DNA of 64,000 nucleotides from Selaginella moellendorffii (lineage: Eukaryota; Plantae; Lycopodiophyta), in NCBI RefSeq assembly GCF_000143415.4, contig NW_003314277.1:1811185-1875184 (forward strand). The letters are read 5' to 3'. Below are positions 53,914-61,647 of the stretch, piece after piece. Under the pieces are notes generated by a model. That model did no database searches. It was not told the DNA's origin and saw only the letters and a list, made by a program, of their open reading frames with translations. Position numbers and translations under genes: made by a program. Every line of letters starts with the position of its first letter. The stretch's first letter is position 1.

Positions 53914-56424
53914 TCACCTCACTTCGCCTTCTTCCTCCTCTTCTTCGATCCACCCCCCTGTTCCTGTTCGTGCCAGTTCCTGGACTTGGATCCCCAGCGA
54001 TGGTGCTTTACGTCTGTAGAACCTCACATTAGACTCGGCCAGAACCAATCCTTTTGCTGCCACCAGCTTTTCCGCAACAAGCTCGTCAACCGTGATTTCG
54101 GCGACGGGGGTCCGATTTTTCCAGAAAAACTTCTTCACAGCCCTTTGGAATTCCTCCAGCACGCCTTCGCCAAGAACCGCTCTAACCACGAGTTCGCACA
54201 CTGCTCCCGATAGAGCCCTCGAATCCAGCGTCAGCGGGAATCCAGTGAAGTTCAAAACGCAGGTGCTGGTGCCCGACGTGAAATTCTTGGGCCTATAGAC
54301 TGCTCCCGGCCAAATGTAAGTGGGAGGCCTGTGTAGTGTCAACGGCAGCTCCTTGTGGCAGAATTCTCGCGTGAATCTGATATAAGCGGACATTAGTGCA
54401 TCCGCATCAGCATCCGATTGAAGAAAGACTAGTGCCTTGGGCTCTTGCCCCACCCAGCTTATCCTCGTGATGCAATCTGCCACGCTTTTTTCTGGTTGCA
54501 ACTTCTTCATCCCCTTCCGCAGCAGCATCCTGAGCTTGGTAGGATCATAACGGGAAGTTTCAGTCGGCAAGTTGACGATGAAAAGAGTTTTCTGCGCGTG
54601 AGGCTGGAATGGCCTCAGGACCCGGCCAGCCACAAACAACCTGTCCTTGCTGCTCATCAGAGCGCTCGCAGCCTGCTCTTCGAGTATTGCAAAGCAGCAG
54701 CCCTCCCTGAAAAGCACGTCTCTGAAAGGAGGCTTGCCTTCTTCCAGCACGCTGGTTCTCAAAAGCACCGTCTCCAGGGCCTCGGCCAGTGCACATCTGA
54801 ACTGTCTCTCGGCAACCGTGCAAACTCGACACCCGTCGAATTGCAGCACTTTGTAGATGCTTGATGATGCACCGGTCTTGTACGCCGCACGAGGTCGCTG
54901 GTAACCTTCTGGGCGAAACAACGAGAACTTCAAGTCATCCAAGGAGAACTCTTCTGTAGCCCGGACATAAATTTCCATGAGACGGTTGGCCATATCCTCG
55001 GAAGAGAATATTACCCGCCCTCCATCCGCTGCAGCATCCCACTTCACCTGGAATTTCAGGTCCGCTTCACTTGTATAATTCTTGTGCTTTCGAAAGAGAC
55101 CGACGAGCAGCTTCTTCAACTGTTCAGAGTCGAACGTTTCTTTTTGGAACCCCCCAAGCATGATGGACACTTGGTGAAGGCCCCTCTCAGCCACTTGTCT
55201 TTGCCCAGCCCCAGAAAGTCCTTGCATGTGTTGAACTTGACGGTCAATGTTGGATGTAACACGAGCTAAGGGTCTTGCCTCCGGAACTCTATCTTGCTGT
55301 TTGCCTTGTGCTGCATGTCCTAAATCGAATCGCACGGAACGCTGCTTCTCCGTCGATGGACACTCTCGCACCTTTGTGTTCTTTGTCTTCGCTGGGCTTT
55401 CCTGTTGTTGAACGCTACTCAGCTTAACTGGTTCCTCCCGGTTTTGTTGCTCAAGGTTACTCCCCTTCTGTCTTCCCTGTTGTTCAAGGCTACTCTGCCT
55501 CTGCATCGATGGACAGTCTCGCACCTTTGTGTTCTTTGATCTCAAACCGCCTGGGCTTTCCTGCTGTTGAACGCTACTCAGCTTCTCTGTTTCCTCCCGG
55601 ATTTGTTGTTCAAAGCAGACTCGCTCTTCAAGGTTTCTCGCAGTTCTCTGGCGGCATTGTTGACTTGCTGGCGAGACATCACTCTCCTCGGAAACTTGGA
55701 AAGGCTCTCGCGACAGTGGTAGAGTCCTGACGCCACAGCAGATCACCAAGTTCTGATCGATGTCTGACGTGATGCTTCCATCCAGCTTGCAACTGTAGAA
55801 AAGCTTCTCAACTGCTGCTTTGTCTGTGAATTCGACATACGCTGCCGCTGGCAAAACGTGGACAGAACCCACCACCTTTGATGTCAAGTCCCTGTTCAAG
55901 ACCCCACTAAAGTGGGCTTCTAGCTTGTCCCCGTCCTCCCAACTTGGAGGAAGACCACTGAGGTACACAAACTTTGACGACACCTCCAGAGATCGTACTA
56001 CGTTTACCACGTTGTTTCCATGCCCCTCAAACTGCCTGCTCGCTGTGTAGAGCCTTTCCAGCGCAAACCTTTTCCCGGCGATGGAGAAAGGCGAGCTCGT
56101 CTCGTCGCGACAGACCTGGAAGAGCAGCTCGGCCATGAGCTCCGTGTAGAACACCAGGATGGCCATGTCGCCCTCGACATGCAAACAGTAGAACACCTTC
56201 TCCACAAACTCGTCACAGGGCGGGAAGAACCGGAAGCGCTTGCGAAGAATGTCGTCGGCGAGCTCCTGCAAGGCCTCGGGGCAAGTGTGCTTCTTTGACA
56301 GCGCACGCACCACGAGAGAGTAGGAGCGCTCCTTGATCGCTGGCCCGGGGAAAAAATCTGGTGCTTGAGCTGTCGCCGCCGGCTCGAAAAATCTGGCTGC
56401 TACCGCCTTGGGCAAATCCGGCAT
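53914..56424 (-). CDS. Intronless 836 aa protein with ~6 degenerate RRM-like (U2AF65 RRM1-like) domains, paralog B
   Basis: RNP2/RNP1-like FVYLSGLP...AAYVEF and LFIVNLP...KALVFL. Domain ends FRPEGYQRP and HRPPTYIWP. Colinear with 57090-59558. Confidence 0.75.
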   Translation of the reverse strand: MPDLPKAVAARFFEPAATAQAPDFFPGPAIKERSYSLVVRALSKKHTCPEALQELADDILRKRFRFFPPCDEFVEKVFYCLHVEGDMAILVFYTELMAELLFQVCRDETSSPFSIAGKRFALERLYTASRQFEGHGNNVVNVVRSLEVSSKFVYLSGLPPSWEDGDKLEAHFSGVLNRDLTSKVVGSVHVLPAAAYVEFTDKAAVEKLFYSCKLDGSITSDIDQNLVICCGVRTLPLSREPFQVSEESDVSPASQQCRQRTARNLEERVCFEQQIREETEKLSSVQQQESPGGLRSKNTKVRDCPSMQRQSSLEQQGRQKGSNLEQQNREEPVKLSSVQQQESPAKTKNTKVRECPSTEKQRSVRFDLGHAAQGKQQDRVPEARPLARVTSNIDRQVQHMQGLSGAGQRQVAERGLHQVSIMLGGFQKETFDSEQLKKLLVGLFRKHKNYTSEADLKFQVKWDAAADGGRVIFSSEDMANRLMEIYVRATEEFSLDDLKFSLFRPEGYQRPRAAYKTGASSSIYKVLQFDGCRVCTVAERQFRCALAEALETVLLRTSVLEEGKPPFRDVLFREGCCFAILEEQAASALMSSKDRLFVAGRVLRPFQPHAQKTLFIVNLPTETSRYDPTKLRMLLRKGMKKLQPEKSVADCITRISWVGQEPKALVFLQSDADADALMSAYIRFTREFCHKELPLTLHRPPTYIWPGAVYRPKNFTSGTSTCVLNFTGFPLTLDSRALSGAVCELVVRAVLGEGVLEEFQRAVKKFFWKNRTPVAEITVDELVAEKLVAAKGLVLAESNVRFYRRKAPSLGIQVQELARTGTGGWIEEEEEEGEVR

Positions 56425-56953
56425 CGCCGCTGGCGGGCCTGCGCTTAGAAATCTGTGAATCTTTCGGAATCAGCGCCGGCTTTCCAAGCGTTTGGTTCTA
56501 GCTAGGAACTGGTAGACCAAGTTACCTTGACGATCGGAAATATTTCGCCCTCTCCCCGGATTACGACGATCGCGCAAGCACTGCCGCCGGGCGCCGATGT
56601 CCATCCGCCGCTCCAAGAACTGCCACTCCCCGATCGCGATCGTGAGAGAAAGAACGCAAGAACGCCGATTCCCGGCGGGGATTTTCACCTGGAGCCCCGG
56701 CGCTGCTGATCCGCCGGGCCTGGAATCGGCGCTCGCGGCGGACGCTAGGCGGCAGCGGCGGCATTCTTGGACGGGAAGAAGAAACCTCCGCCATTCGGTT
56801 GTCGCTGGCGCGGCGCGTCCGTGGTACCTAGCGGCATTTCAATGTAAAACTAACAAACACGCAAAATGGGAAGCCCTCACAGCTATACCGTGCCATCTTT
56901 CTCCATAGCATAGCAGGGAAGGAATCTTGGTGATGCAGACATCTACGGCAACG

Positions 56954-57085
56954 GCATATACCCCTTCGTTTTAGACAGAATATCCTATCTTGACATACTC
57001 CGGGCACGGAATATCCTTAGACCTAATAGCATATTCTTTCCCTTTTCAAGCAGCAGAATATCCCCTCCGTTTGGGTAGAATATTC
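56954..57085. promoter_or_regulatory. Six P1BS-type GNATATNC sites in 132 bp
   Basis: GCATATAC 56954, GAATATCC 56978, GAATATCC 57009, GCATATTC 57029, GAATATCC 57056, GAATATTC 57078. Confidence 0.65.
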
Positions 57086-57089
57086 GCTC

Positions 57090-59558
57090 TCATTTTTCTT
57101 CCTCTTCGATCCAGCCTCCAGTTCTACGAGGAGATCCTTCTTCTCCTTCGCGAAAAACCGTGGCGTCATAGAACGAAATGTGGTGCCCGGCCAGCGTCAA
57201 TCCTTTGACATCCACCAGCTTGGCGGCGACGTCCTCCTCCACGATCAAGCTCGCAAGTTCGCTCCCCTTCTGCCAGTAGAACCGCTTGAAAGGCCTCTCG
57301 CCCTGCTCCAGGATGCCATGCTTCGCCAGCGCCATCTCCAGCAGCTCGTTCACGGCCCCCATGAGTGGGATGGGATCCAGCCCCGGGAAAATCCCCGCGA
57401 CGTGAACTTGCCACAGCTCTGGTTGCTGATGATCATCGCCCCAGCCCGGCGGAAGATCTAGATCGATCTTCCTGTCCCTCTTCCTGTAAGTTGCTCCAGG
57501 CCGGACGTAGCGCTCGTGGCGGAAGATCACCAGCGGCATGTCCCACACGCAGAAGTCGAGCGTGAAGTTGACGTAGGCGCTCATGAGCGCGTCCGCGGCG
57601 GCCTCGCTGCGCAGTGTCACCCTGGCCACGCTGCGACCTGACCACTCGATCCGCTCGATGGTGCTGCGGTGGTCGACGCTCATCTTCGCCAGCCCCGACG
57701 CGAGCAGCTGTCCGAGCTTGTCGAGAGTGTTGCCGACGGCCTCCGGGAGCTCGGCCACGAACAAAGTCACCTGGACTTTGGAAGTGTAGATGGAGAGAGG
57801 CCGGCGAGCCACTGTCAAGCCGACGCAGGCTGAGACGAGAGCGTTGGCCACCACCTCGTCCAGTACCGCCACAGCCTTGGTCTCGAAGTTCGTGAAGCTC
57901 TTGAAGAGAGGTTTGCCTTTCTCCACCACCCCGTGTTTCAGGAGCATCCTCTCCACGGCCTCCACGAGAGCTCCTTTGAGTTGCTCGCGGTGCAAGTGAA
58001 CGCCTAGCCCGTCGAAGGTGACGGCTTTGCCATCGGTTGACAGGTTGCCTTCTCTGTAAATCGCGCCTGGTCGATGGTAGCCTTCCGGTCGAGACAACCA
58101 GAACCTCGAGCTGTTCAAGTAAAACTCTTCCGGGAACTGCATGTAGTTGTCCAGAAGGCGATCCACGGTGTTCTCGGAAGAAAAAGCGACTACCGCCTCT
58201 TTCGGAGATCTCCACGAAACCTCCGGTTCTGCATCGCTGTGGAGCTGGAACTTTCGAAGCATGCTCGAGAAATGGTATGCCACTCGCTCCGAGTCGAACT
58301 TCTCCCTGGTAAGTCCTCCGATCACTAGCCCGCATTGCCTGAGCCTGAATTCTCGTCTCTGTCTTTGCATTTCTGGCGGAACTGCTTCTTCCCACACGAC
58401 CCGGCAGCCCCTCTGCGTTGGCGGCTCCCAAACTACTTGACGGCAGCTCGGACCTGTCGCTCGGGGAGATGGAGTTCCGCATTCCATCGAGTCATCGATG
58501 TGCACGTTTCGGATAATCTCCTCGGGCGACCGCAAAGCTTCGCCTTGCTGCTCAACTTGAGGAGTTGACGTCCTTGCCGCTGGAGCTCCTACCTTGTCAA
58601 CTTGTTTTTCCAGATCCTTGAGTTGCACTGTCACCTTTTCTCTAGTTGAGCTTGCAACTTCACGCCGCTTCCCCGCCGGAGTGCTCGTCATTGTCTCCGT
58701 AGCGCAAGAATCCTCCAAAGTTTTCCTCTTCTCTTCGAAAACAACCTCTTGCTCTTCTGCTGATGCGTCACTCGACTGGCTCCTCCGACCTGGGACCACT
58801 CTCCACAGCGGCAAAATCTTCCCGGAGCAAATCACAACCTCCTGGCCAATGTCCGTCACGATCCTCGCGTCTTGCTCGCACCGAAAGAAGAGCCTGTCAA
58901 TGGCTGCCTTGGACGTACACTCGAGATACGCGGCCCCTGGAAAGACCCGGACCGATGTCACAACTTTGAATGGAAAGTCGCTCTCCAAGAACCCATTGAA
59001 GTATCTTTCGAGCTTGTCCGCGTCCTCCCATTTCCGTGGAACTCCGGCTAGAAAAACGAACTTGGACGCTGGGACTGGCCCTGCCGCTGCTGCTTCCGCC
59101 AGGAAATTCTCGATCATTCGGCACTGCTCGCCTGACCGATCGTAGATCCTCTCCAGCGAGAACCTCTTGCCGGCGATGGAGAAAGGCGAGATCGTCTCAT
59201 CGCAGCACGCGAAGAAGAGAAGCTCCGCCATGAGCTCCGAGGAGAACACCAGGATGCCCATGTCTCCATCGACATGCAAGCAGTAGAAAACCTTCTCCAC
59301 GAATTCGTCACAGGGCGGGAAGAATCGAAAGCTCTCCCGGAGAATGCCGTCGGCGAGCCGCTGCAAATCTTCGGGGCAAGTGTCCTTCTTGGAGATCCCG
59401 CGCACGATGAGAGAGTAAGATCGCTCCTCCTCTCGAAATATCGGCGCTCCCTCTGCCAAAGCATCCGGCTCGCGAGGATGTGTGCCCGCCGCAAGCCTCT
59501 CCAGCCTCTTCTGGAATGCGAGCATGAAAATCTGTTCCTCGATACCTCGATCGCGCAA
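57090..59558 (-). CDS. Intronless ~820 aa multi-RRM-like protein, paralog A
   Basis: Near-identical block FRFFPPCDEFVEKVFYCLHV shared with paralog B; FVFLAGVP...AAYLE; SRPEGYHRPGA; FRHERYVRPGA; C-terminal RRTGGWIEEEEK. The start may be the ATG at ~59526. Confidence 0.75.
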   Translation of the reverse strand: MRDRGIEEQIFMLAFQKRLERLAAGTHPREPDALAEGAPIFREEERSYSLIVRGISKKDTCPEDLQRLADGILRESFRFFPPCDEFVEKVFYCLHVDGDMGILVFSSELMAELLFFACCDETISPFSIAGKRFSLERIYDRSGEQCRMIENFLAEAAAAGPVPASKFVFLAGVPRKWEDADKLERYFNGFLESDFPFKVVTSVRVFPGAAYLECTSKAAIDRLFFRCEQDARIVTDIGQEVVICSGKILPLWRVVPGRRSQSSDASAEEQEVVFEEKRKTLEDSCATETMTSTPAGKRREVASSTREKVTVQLKDLEKQVDKVGAPAARTSTPQVEQQGEALRSPEEIIRNVHIDDSMECGTPSPRATGPSCRQVVWEPPTQRGCRVVWEEAVPPEMQRQRREFRLRQCGLVIGGLTREKFDSERVAYHFSSMLRKFQLHSDAEPEVSWRSPKEAVVAFSSENTVDRLLDNYMQFPEEFYLNSSRFWLSRPEGYHRPGAIYREGNLSTDGKAVTFDGLGVHLHREQLKGALVEAVERMLLKHGVVEKGKPLFKSFTNFETKAVAVLDEVVANALVSACVGLTVARRPLSIYTSKVQVTLFVAELPEAVGNTLDKLGQLLASGLAKMSVDHRSTIERIEWSGRSVARVTLRSEAAADALMSAYVNFTLDFCVWDMPLVIFRHERYVRPGATYRKRDRKIDLDLPPGWGDDHQQPELWQVHVAGIFPGLDPIPLMGAVNELLEMALAKHGILEQGERPFKRFYWQKGSELASLIVEEDVAAKLVDVKGLTLAGHHISFYDATVFREGEEGSPRRTGGWIEEEEK

Positions 59559-59783
59559 GAACTACCTCGATCCCCTCGATCGCGCGATCGCAGTGGATTC
59601 TCGAAGATTTTCGTCGCCGCGAGCAAACATTCCAAGATACCTCTCTTTCCCGCACGCGAGCCCGGACAATCGGGATCGCGAGTATTGTAAAATCATCCAA
59701 AAAGACCTAAAGCCTGCCCTCCTTAAAAACTCGCACAGCCATTTGTCCATAGCTCTCCTAATGACTAGCACGCTTCACAGCAG

Positions 59784-59874
59784 GCATATTCCAAGAACAT
59801 AACGTCCCACAGCCAGAATATAACACGAGCCGGAATATATCACGAGACAGAATATACGAAGAATCAAAATATAC
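59784..59874. promoter_or_regulatory. P1BS-type cluster (2 perfect + 3 near matches, ~17 bp periodicity) upstream of paralog A
   Basis: GCATATTC 59784 and GAATATAC 59850; near matches GAATATAA 59816, GAATATAT 59833 and AAATATAC 59867. Confidence 0.5.
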
Positions 59875-60492
59875 CAACCACGGTATTAGTGTTCCTATTA
59901 ATCAAACCATAGTTTTGTTTTACATAAGCAGCCCGCTCGCTTCAACAGCTCTTTTTTTTTCTCGTGTTTGTTCTTCACGACGCCTTTCTGCGTGAAACCA
60001 ATCAACCTGTATACACGAAAACCGCATTAGCTCCAAATGCTCTCTCTCACCTACACATTTTTTACACATGAGAGTATCACCCTGAAAAACCTGCACGCTT
60101 CAAGAAAACTTTGGAGACGAGGAAAAAAGAAAACGAGGAAGACCAGAAAAAAAAGGATACCTGAGAGACAAGCAGCAGCTATAAAAAAAAATCCTGTTAT
60201 GTTAGTATCAACCTGGAGAGAATGCAAAGGCAAGCAGCCATGCAGGGACCAAGTAGAAGAAAGCAAAAAAAAGGCCTGCTCGGGAATGGAAAAAGCCCGG
60301 AAGAACAAAGAAAAAACCGGGAGAGAGGGAAGAACAGGCAAGACCAAGCAAGCAAAAAATCCAAAAGTTTTGCACATCAAGGTGGTGCCCTGCACACCTG
60401 CACAGAGTGGAGATCTGTGAGCTATGTTTGATGCCACCTGCATGAAGGAAAGCAAGGATTTTCAAGAGAAACCAACCAGAGAGCGTTGCGAT

Positions 60493-61647
60493 TCACTCGG
60501 CGCCGTATGGAAGCTGGTTTCCATTCGCTTCGCCGCCACCGCCGCCTCCGCCGTGCTCCTCTCGCTCCCTGTTCCATTGCTCGATCCTGGCTCGCCTCTC
60601 CACGCTGCCTTCCCGGCCGCCGCGCGATCGAGGACTGCGGCTGCGGCTGCCATCTCGCCTCCGCGGTCGATCGTACCTGCTGTGATGATCGTAGTTACCT
60701 CCTCGATCATCGTACCTCCGTCGTCGATCGTCGTAGTGGCGACGGTCGTCTTGCCTGCGAGGACTCATGCTGCGGCTTCTGCTGCGTCCTCCTCGTCTTC
60801 TGTAGCCTCCAAACAGCCGCCTCCGTAACTCTCTGCAGCAGAGACAATGTCACAAGAACAGGAGTCAGAAAATAAAAAACAGTTTTTGGATGACCAGACC
60901 TTCCAATGCGTCGCAAGTGCATGAAGTTGCAGTAGCCTCCACGGTTACAAGTGTTTTCTTCGTACTGACGACATGTAGCTTCTCGAAAATCGGTCACAGG
61001 CGAAAAATCAACGATGATGGGTCGACCTGCAAAGAAAAACATTTTTGAAAAAACAGGAGAGAAGAGGAACACGCAAACCTGCATAGAAACGTCCTGATAG
61101 TGCCTTCAGAGCCGCAGCAGCTTCTTCCTCCTCCCTAAATTGCACATACACATTTCCAACCTGAAAGGAAGCAACGAAGAAAACAACGAACAAAAACAAA
61201 AAACAAAAAAACAAAGCATCAGAATAAAAATGAGAAACACAAGGCTTACCATATGGTCTGCAAGATTGTCGCACACATTGAGGCTTTCAATCTCCCCATA
61301 CTTGCTGAGCTCCTCAAACATATCCTCGTAAAAGTCCTGCCAAGCAAACAAAAACGAAAAAAGAAAAAATTGAGACCCACAAAGCAAATCTCAAGAAACC
61401 ACTCCAGTACCTCAAAATGCTCCTGGATTTTCTTCTGATCCATCGTCTGCCCATTCAGATCCATCCCCGGCGTCGCCATATCCGGCCTCTGGTACATATT
61501 CGAGAGCAGCAGCGTGGGGCTGATTGTGGGCTTGTTGTGGAGCCTGGAGCAGCGGTCGCCATGGCGGCAAGCACCGATCTTGAAATAGAAGGGGCAGTTA
61601 ACGCGATCCTTCTCTGTGCCGAAGATGGAGGCGAGATGCTCCGCCAT
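60493..61647 (-). CDS. U2AF35: Splicing factor U2AF small subunit (U2AF35), multi-exon
   Basis: [82 protein letters not shown] tail ending [14 protein letters not shown]. Confidence 0.97.

Follow-up and report, generated by a model that had tools for sequence, protein, structure and literature searches.

An undescribed family of multi-RRM proteins in land plants, traced from two tandem genes of Selaginella moellendorffii

Two neighbouring intronless genes in a 64,000-nucleotide stretch of Selaginella moellendorffii DNA (RefSeq assembly GCF_000143415.4, contig NW_003314277.1, positions 1,811,185 to 1,875,184; hereafter the window) encode proteins that, judged from profile searches and alignments, belong to an undescribed family of land-plant proteins with several RNA recognition motifs (RRMs). 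So far the family is seen in the moss genus Sphagnum, the lycophyte Selaginella and the ferns. We call the downstream gene paralogue A and the upstream one paralogue B; in the original prediction, which was made from the letters of the window, our A was 'paralog B'. On balance, the explanation that we favour is that this uncharacterised family supplies adaptors for RNA or ribonucleoproteins (RNPs), equipped with a docking peptide made of a tryptophan (Trp) and acidic residues. A and B themselves are probably adaptors of this type, each drawing in a partner through its peptide. RRM proteins are well mapped, yet we found no Pfam model for the core domains of this family, and literature searches by locus tag and by the combination of WIYLD, CCCH and RRM found no paper on it.

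The features of the two genes are listed below (D1 to D6, domains; M1 and M2, two-domain modules; aa, amino acids).

53914-56424, minus strand: paralogue A, intronless coding sequence with an ATG start, 836 aa plus stop
56041-56337, minus strand: A D1 (aa 30-128), a degenerate RRM that aligns with the first RRM of moss and fern relatives
55720-55983, minus strand: A D2 (aa 148-235), RRM-type by the D2 profile and the family alignment
55183-55719, minus strand: A variable Q/E/S-rich linker (aa 236-414), which cannot be aligned between A and B
54601-55182, minus strand: A module M1, D3 (aa 415-516) plus D4 (aa 520-608), by hhalign against M2
54007-54600, minus strand: A module M2, D5 (aa 609-712, ending in LHRPPTYIWPGAVY) plus D6 (aa 718-806), by structure model and fold searches
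53917-53961, minus strand: A C-terminal peptide TGGWIEEEEEEGEVR, the Trp-acidic motif plus EEGEV, modelled as disordered
57090-59525, minus strand: paralogue B, intronless coding sequence, 811 aa, ATG at 59525, with the six-domain plan of A
57093-57122, minus strand: B C-terminal peptide TGGWIEEEEK, from the translation

Domain plan, fold and relatives

The plan of both proteins, proposed in the original prediction as two N-terminal units, a variable linker and a duplicated two-domain module, is borne out by alignments and by profile comparison. M1 (A 415-608) matches M2 (A 609-806) with an hhalign probability of 99.4% (E 6e-22), and the single domains pair as D3 with D5 (98.5%) and D4 with D6 (97.2%); D1 matches D3 weakly (54%). 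This internal duplication of A is invisible when the protein is compared with itself by BLASTP, and it was the profile comparison that revealed it. A maximum-likelihood tree built for the module groups M1 of A with M1 of B (100/98) and M2 of A with M2 of B (84/89), so the module was doubled before the A/B gene split. Tandem Repeats Finder reported no coding repeats in either gene. In the linker of A, a Q/E/S-rich unit of ~45-50 aa occurs in two copies (55327-55623, minus strand; 65% identical, E 2e-16) and does not occur in B.

The unit-ending motifs are LFRPEGYQRPRAAY, LHRPPTYIWPGAVY, LSRPEGYHRPGAIY and IFRHERYVRPGATY. Translations and alignments thus confirm the predicted pattern L.RP.(G/T)Y.(R/W)PGA.Y, together with the degenerate RNP aromatics and the lack of an arginine/serine-rich (RS) domain. 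Neither A nor B has a run of RS, SR, RD or RE repeats, and across its 800-plus residues each contains only 8-10 dipeptides of the RS or SR kind.

An AlphaFold2 (AF2) model of A 605-836, built on an 18-sequence family alignment, reaches a mean predicted local distance difference test score (pLDDT) of 86 and a predicted TM-score (pTM) of 0.82. It shows D5 and D6 as two beta-alpha-beta-beta-alpha-beta domains whose mutual arrangement is fixed and which are followed by a disordered tail; both have the RRM sandwich fold of ~80-100 residues. The same fold is assigned to D3 and D4 by their homology to D5 and D6. For D1 and D2 the assignment as RRMs draws on the family alignment, on matches of Pfam RRM_1 to D1 of moss members (best E 2.4e-6) and on weak matches of a D1-D2 profile to the PDB, nearly all of which are RRM proteins. 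A model of full-length A, built on a two-sequence alignment, has a pLDDT of 39 and served for the order of secondary structure only. The predicted RRM fold is therefore upheld by the model, the fold searches, the family alignment and the moss Pfam matches. A Pfam scan of A and B at E <= 1 gave no match, and most of the relatives scanned had no Pfam match at all; none of the full-length, module and motif-half profiles had a significant match among PDB sequences. The domains were rejected as xRRMs of the LARP7/p65/Pof8 type, whose C-terminal helix 3 across the sheet, combined with absent RNP1 and RNP2, was not found in them.

A full hidden Markov model (HMM) search of 1.84 billion representative proteins with an A/B-centred profile (E <= 0.001) yielded 15 clusters or proteins, that is, 13 beyond A and B. 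The named clusters comprise further Selaginella paralogues (412408/438595, 402266/408603 and LOC112347613) and proteins of Sphagnum, Pteridium, Ceratopteris and Adiantum, and the remaining ones are unnamed Logan transcripts. The original prediction had called the genes lineage-specific, which does not hold given the members in Sphagnum and ferns. No seed-plant protein is among the matches, an absence that is provisional because the profile is centred on A and B. Word-index homologue searches with A (the whole protein and residues 415-836) returned only its alleles and its paralogue, and a search of the same kind with P0004, a family member of 1400 aa, returned a single Sphagnum cluster.

When the six domain HMMs are mapped on the relatives, the common order is D2, a D5-type and a D6-type domain, and in the alignment these are preceded by a D1-type domain. 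The family core thus appears to consist of four domains, D1, D2, D5 and D6, the six-domain form being special to A and B. The D2 HMM matches all family members checked except the fragment P0015. The motif at the end of D5, RP..Y.RPGA.Y, is a signature of the family, in which R95, Y99, R101, P102 and G103 vary little or not at all. Moss proteins have further domains: the Sphagnum member of 2030 aa begins with a WIYLD domain (a ubiquitin-binding domain), and of its four RRMs the third and fourth, D5 and D6, are separated by a CCCH finger. This protein was read from Sphagnum fallax (L010:10001-17456 and L011:393-6485), and a Logan contig (SRR12193047) has its 2030-aa open reading frame (ORF) without interruption. 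P0004 is 51% identical to the Sphagnum protein and probably comes from a moss. Its coding sequence is one unbroken ORF of 4.2 kb (L005:8001-12203 and L006:840-5042; Logan SRR22405887, SRR36092047), so large exons or intronless genes seem usual in the family and not peculiar to A and B. The RNP motifs of moss and fern members are canonical in D1 and D5, where both RNP2 and RNP1 are present, and D2 retains RNP2 only; examples from moss and fern members are LYVGNLP and HYAHVEF, and the fern D5 has KDYAFFQF.

We propose that the ancestral core comprised RRM D1, RRM D2, RRM D5 with its rigid C-terminal RP..Y.RPGA.Y extension, and D6, a degenerate RRM in which a GALNELFER-type helix is conserved. 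In the lineage of A and B the D5-D6 module was duplicated before the gene split, giving six domains, after which most RNP aromatics would have eroded. The proteins may act as nuclear RNA-binding proteins or RNP adaptors, their RRM array holding RNA or, in A and B, partly protein, and the disordered TGGW(I/L)E-acidic peptide would dock a conserved partner through its Trp.

The Trp-acidic tail and the likeness to U2AF65

Both proteins carry TGGWIEEEE at their ends, and A alone adds EEGEVR, exactly as foreseen in the original prediction (a shared RTGGWIEEEE tail, with EEGEV in one paralog). A stretch of TGGW(I/L)E that runs on into acidic residues is found in A, in B, in P0004 (position 884 of 1400) and in Sphagnum (position 1769 of 2030; TGGWLEDDDD), in each case within disordered and otherwise unalignable surroundings. 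An eight-residue match with a Trp cannot be chance, so we regard this as a conserved short linear motif.

The tail had been read as a UHM ligand motif (ULM), which would bind the U2AF homology motif (UHM) of U2AF35. In a ULM, basic residues precede a Trp and residues that are acidic or N/Q follow it (PMC6511859). The basic residues upstream of T-G-G-W vary: B has RR, A a single R and Sphagnum K, and P0004 has none. With T-G-G before the Trp, an I or L behind it ahead of the acidic residues, and no conserved upstream basics, the peptide departs from the ULM definition.

The second part of the A tail fared better, since EEGEV matches the published ARS2-recruitment consensus [ED][ED]GE[ILV] (PMC9402713; bioRxiv 10.1101/2023.07.25.550453). 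The ELM entry LIG_ARS2_EDGEI_1 gives Arabidopsis examples, and the motif is reported to be functional in plants. Both haplotypes of A have it at aa 831-835, where the sequence is acidic and modelled as disordered (pLDDT <50). Sphagnum has a fitting EDGEL 114 residues past its Trp motif. An EDGEL is also present at residue 149 of the Ceratopteris richardii protein P0009 (KP509_06G038500), in a disordered N-terminal region far from the position of the motif in A and Sphagnum; an exact-protein look-up of P0009 gave no record. Altogether 3 of the 15 family proteins have such a motif, where shuffling gives an expectation of 0.3, and a local shuffle of the last 40 residues of A gives P 0.008. Known effectors of the cap-binding complex (CBC) and ARS2 couple an [ED][ED]GE[ILV] motif with a CBP80-binding Trp site (bioRxiv 10.1101/2023.07.25.550453). 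This pairing and the excess over expectation make a link to SERRATE and the CBC a better lead than U2AF35, though only a lead.

The other claim that bears on splicing was that the domains resemble RRM1 of U2AF65. It stands in part. A Foldseek search with the D5-D6 model places U2AF65 RRM1-RRM2 first (E 2.7e-8), with IMP3 RRM12 close behind and NONO/SFPQ, hnRNP A2/B1 and HuR among the later matches. A top structure match to U2AF65, the outcome that the original prediction expected, is thus obtained literally, but it does not discriminate: counting rows less than 1 Z unit apart as tied, the lead of U2AF65 is below 1 and it ties with the Pof8 xRRM and nucleolin. In the structural alignment, model residues 3-96 lie on residues 144-229 of the U2AF65 chain, and R95-P96 fall on U2AF65 residues 228-229 at the alignment end. 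We take the latter to be the start of RRPHDY in U2AF65. A PDB title, 'D231V variant', confirms Asp231 only, so the agreement in RP.DY register rests on the VIA alignment ranges and on this assumed numbering.

Sequence profiles do not single out U2AF65. A ten-sequence D5 profile against the PDB gives U2AF65 at E 0.4 and CPEB4 at 0.22, besides CPEB3 and Musashi, none of them significant. U2AF65 does not appear at E <= 10 with a profile of the half from helix 2 to the motif, nor with the module profile, nor with a D5 profile weighted towards mosses and ferns, which finds CPEB4 (0.016), CPEB3, ZNF638, PTBP1 and Nrd1. These results indicate that the domains are RRMs and leave descent from U2AF65 in particular unsupported; the likeness is best read as one of shared RRM subtype shape. 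Membership of the U2AF large subunit family was rejected on the same grounds, there being no significant sequence match, no N-terminal RS domain and no C-terminal UHM after two RRMs. D6 was likewise rejected as a UHM. Only a 30-aa disordered tail follows it, and Arg-x-Phe, the UHM signature, is not conserved in D6 of the family alignment.

The gene pair and its neighbourhood

The predicted pair of tandem intronless genes of about 820-840 aa, on the same strand and downstream of U2AF35, is present as described. The ORF of B is open to 59558, giving 822 aa if counted from a TTG instead of 811. A and B align end to end with 39-42% identity (E 6e-158), and their synonymous divergence (dS) of ~1.5 makes the duplication old. 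Between haplotypes, the ratio of nonsynonymous to synonymous divergence (dN/dS) amounts to 0.3-0.4 across the domains, against 0.9-1.3 for the linker (for A, 0.38-0.41 versus 0.9). A and B are therefore old tandem duplicates, both of which are maintained by purifying selection. Between A and B, dN/dS for D4-D6 is 0.5-0.7, which is high for RRMs. D1 is the best-conserved part (dN 0.13). Its dS (A 56041-56337 against B 59136-59429) is 0.55, compared with 1.0 to saturation in the other domains, which suggests gene conversion, or a constraint at the nucleotide level, in the 5' portion of the genes.

The exact B protein is encoded on scaffold GL377581.1 of the S. moellendorffii assembly GCA_000143415.2. 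The allelic region lies on GL377566.1, and U2AF35, B and A have the same order on both haplotypes. Neither ORF is broken in the second haplotype, where they measure 824 aa (B allele) and 844 aa (A allele). The public model for that A allele, SELMODRAFT_403402 (608 aa; L002:8001-10535, GL377566.1), diverges from the 844-aa ORF past residue ~555, and its remainder is unrelated to it. As it leaves an intact ORF, we consider this model an annotation artefact and not a sign of a broken gene; one use of the present analysis is to correct the public annotation, in which an A allele appears as a truncated protein.

The upstream neighbour of B is the following gene.

60493-61647, minus strand: U2AF35 (small U2AF subunit) gene, five exons

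B starts ~970 bp downstream of the end of this gene (stop at 60493). The five exons, with an RD/RS-rich tail at the end, come from a three-frame reading of each exon, and the reference search was made with exon 1 only, which matches Pfam zf-CCCH (E 1.9e-8); the annotated product has 290 aa, with zf-CCCH and RRM_1. A 21-bp repeat of 2.6 copies (60684-60737) lies in its Arg/Asp-rich last exon, and a 17-bp tandem repeat of 2.7 copies (59811-59856) lies in the spacer between U2AF35 and B.

Elsewhere the family has other neighbours. Selaginella paralogue C sits beside DUF3537 and DUF789 genes, paralogue D between a Myb-type gene and an acetyltransferase gene, and the Sphagnum gene near a TIR-NB-ARC gene. 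U2AF35 is absent from all three of these other family loci, the ones that were checked, so the adjacency in the window is most likely a coincidence. The functional link to U2AF35 that had been proposed is not supported, and nothing connects A or B to the recognition of very short introns, the suggested role.

Competing explanations and known systems

Several observations weigh against our preferred explanation. Ferns lack the Trp motif, as do Selaginella paralogues C, D and E, and the ARS2-recruitment-type motif is absent from B, P0004 and most ferns and has no conserved position. A and B do not have the clear basic clusters that are found in the C-termini of fern and Selaginella C relatives, which bears on their supposed nuclear location. 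Their RNP1 and RNP2 positions are mostly non-aromatic and degenerate; with RNPs canonical in mosses and degenerate in A and B, the family is likely to bind RNA, whereas for A and B this is uncertain. Exact-protein look-ups gave no transcript of A or its allele, neither exact protein was found in the transcript/assembly index outside the genome, and we found no experiment or expression data for either.

The degenerate RNPs could also mean that A and B are RRM-fold scaffolds that make protein contacts only, without binding RNA, or drifting duplicates of little function. In most of their domains RNP1 and RNP2 have degenerated relative to mosses, their D4-D6 evolve fast for RRMs, and one allele is annotated as a truncated model. 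However, ORFs of 811-844 aa have been kept on two haplotypes, domains are constrained where the linker, with a dN/dS of ~1, is not, and the tail motif has been retained since the split from mosses. We consider this reading quite unlikely. A splicing origin is rather more doubtful still. It would make A and B factors derived from U2AF65 RRM1, with the Trp tail as a ULM on the UHM of the neighbouring U2AF35, in a lineage-specific module for 3' splice sites. The nearest solved shape and the register at R95-P96 speak for it. Against it stand the Z lead below 1, the failure of two other profiles to find U2AF65, the identity of 12-16%, the missing RS domain and UHM, the T-G-G before the Trp with its unconserved upstream basics, the family loci that lie elsewhere without U2AF35, and an AF2 model that leaves the tail free. 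An origin from retroelements, as RRM-containing ORFs like LINE ORF1p, would account for intronless tandem genes. We rejected it as extremely improbable: the match is no better than to dozens of cellular RRMs, copies are few (15 clusters in 1.84 billion proteins), orthologues lie at unrelated single-copy loci across mosses, lycophytes and ferns, and neither a reverse transcriptase nor an endonuclease nor a repeat context accompanies the genes.

The adaptor reading leaves the partner to be named, and we would rank the candidates as the CBC/SERRATE (ARS2) axis, then another protein with a Trp pocket, then the U2AF35 UHM; the first place is owed to the EEGEV that A adds. Taken as an explanation in its own right, this would make the proteins CBC/SERRATE effectors, with the Trp peptide in the Trp pocket of CBP80 and EEGEV or EDGEL on the zinc-finger leg of SERRATE, as in ZC3H18, NCBP3 and PHAX, routing RNAs to processing or decay. 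The tail of A joins both motifs, Sphagnum has TGGWLEDDDD and then EDGEL, Ceratopteris has EDGEL, and the count of 3 in 15 exceeds the 0.3 expected. Known ARS2 effectors, too, combine a CBP80 Trp site with the motif and often have CCCH or other RNA-binding domains, and moss members have a CCCH finger. However, the motif is missing from B, P0004 and most members, its position varies, and acidic tails match the consensus easily, although the local shuffle gives P 0.008 for A; in addition, the known CBP80-binding Trp sites are helical. We regard such an effector role as possible but unlikely. Somewhat less likely again is a broader version, an ancient CBC/SERRATE-hub effector restricted to seed-free plants, in which the RRM/CCCH array selects RNAs while TGGW(I/L)E and EEGEV/EDGEL bind CBP80 (or another Trp-pocket protein) and SERRATE. 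If it is true, it would bring to light a pathway of RNA fate that has been lost or replaced in seed plants. A weaker variant would make the Trp peptide a non-canonical ligand of the U2AF35 UHM.

The family is of use in itself. D5 with its rigid RP..Y.RPGA.Y extension and D6 with its conserved helix form a well-defined new pair of RRM subtypes, the eight-residue Trp-acidic peptide common to Selaginella and mosses is a handle for finding the partner, and the SERRATE/CBC hub is a lead open to experiment. The value of these results lies mainly in a clean starting point for bench work with Ceratopteris, Sphagnum or Selaginella, more than in any new mechanism.

Of the known systems, U2AF65 RRM1-RRM2 offers the nearest solved shape, but at 12-16% identity it gives no significant or stable profile match. 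Unlike U2AF65, the family has no RS domain, ULM or UHM third domain, and it has four or six RRMs in another order. The relative orientation of the two domains also differs between U2AF65 and the D5-D6 model, with a root-mean-square deviation of 9-17 A across both. The best, borderline PDB sequence matches of the moss/fern D5 profile are RRM1 of CPEB3/4, ZNF638 and PTBP1 (E 0.016-0.27). They cover strand 3 and helix 2, corresponding to the family pattern ...YAF.QF.SE..ADAIMD.YIE, but are at or below significance and have neither the RP..Y.RPGA.Y extension nor a paired D6.

The RRM-like repeats of PARP14, NMI and RBM43 (RRM_PARP14_3, NID) are the nearest clusters by protein language model, with scores of 0.79-0.86 whether the whole protein or D5-D6 is compared, and like A and B these proteins have arrays of degenerate RRM-like domains. 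However, the scores are below 0.9, the level at which the tool offers more than a lead, and these are animal families with other partner domains. The ARS2/SERRATE-CBC effectors (ZC3H18, NCBP3, PHAX and ZFC3H1/Red1) showed no homology to the family in the searches run, none of which was a direct comparison, and TGGW(I/L)E-acidic is not the known CBP80-binding helix. What they share with the family is a manner of construction, in which RNA-binding or CCCH domains are combined with short disordered peptides. In these effectors the peptides are the acidic [ED][ED]GE[ILV] motif and a conserved Trp site, and the acidic motif is carried by A, Sphagnum and Ceratopteris.

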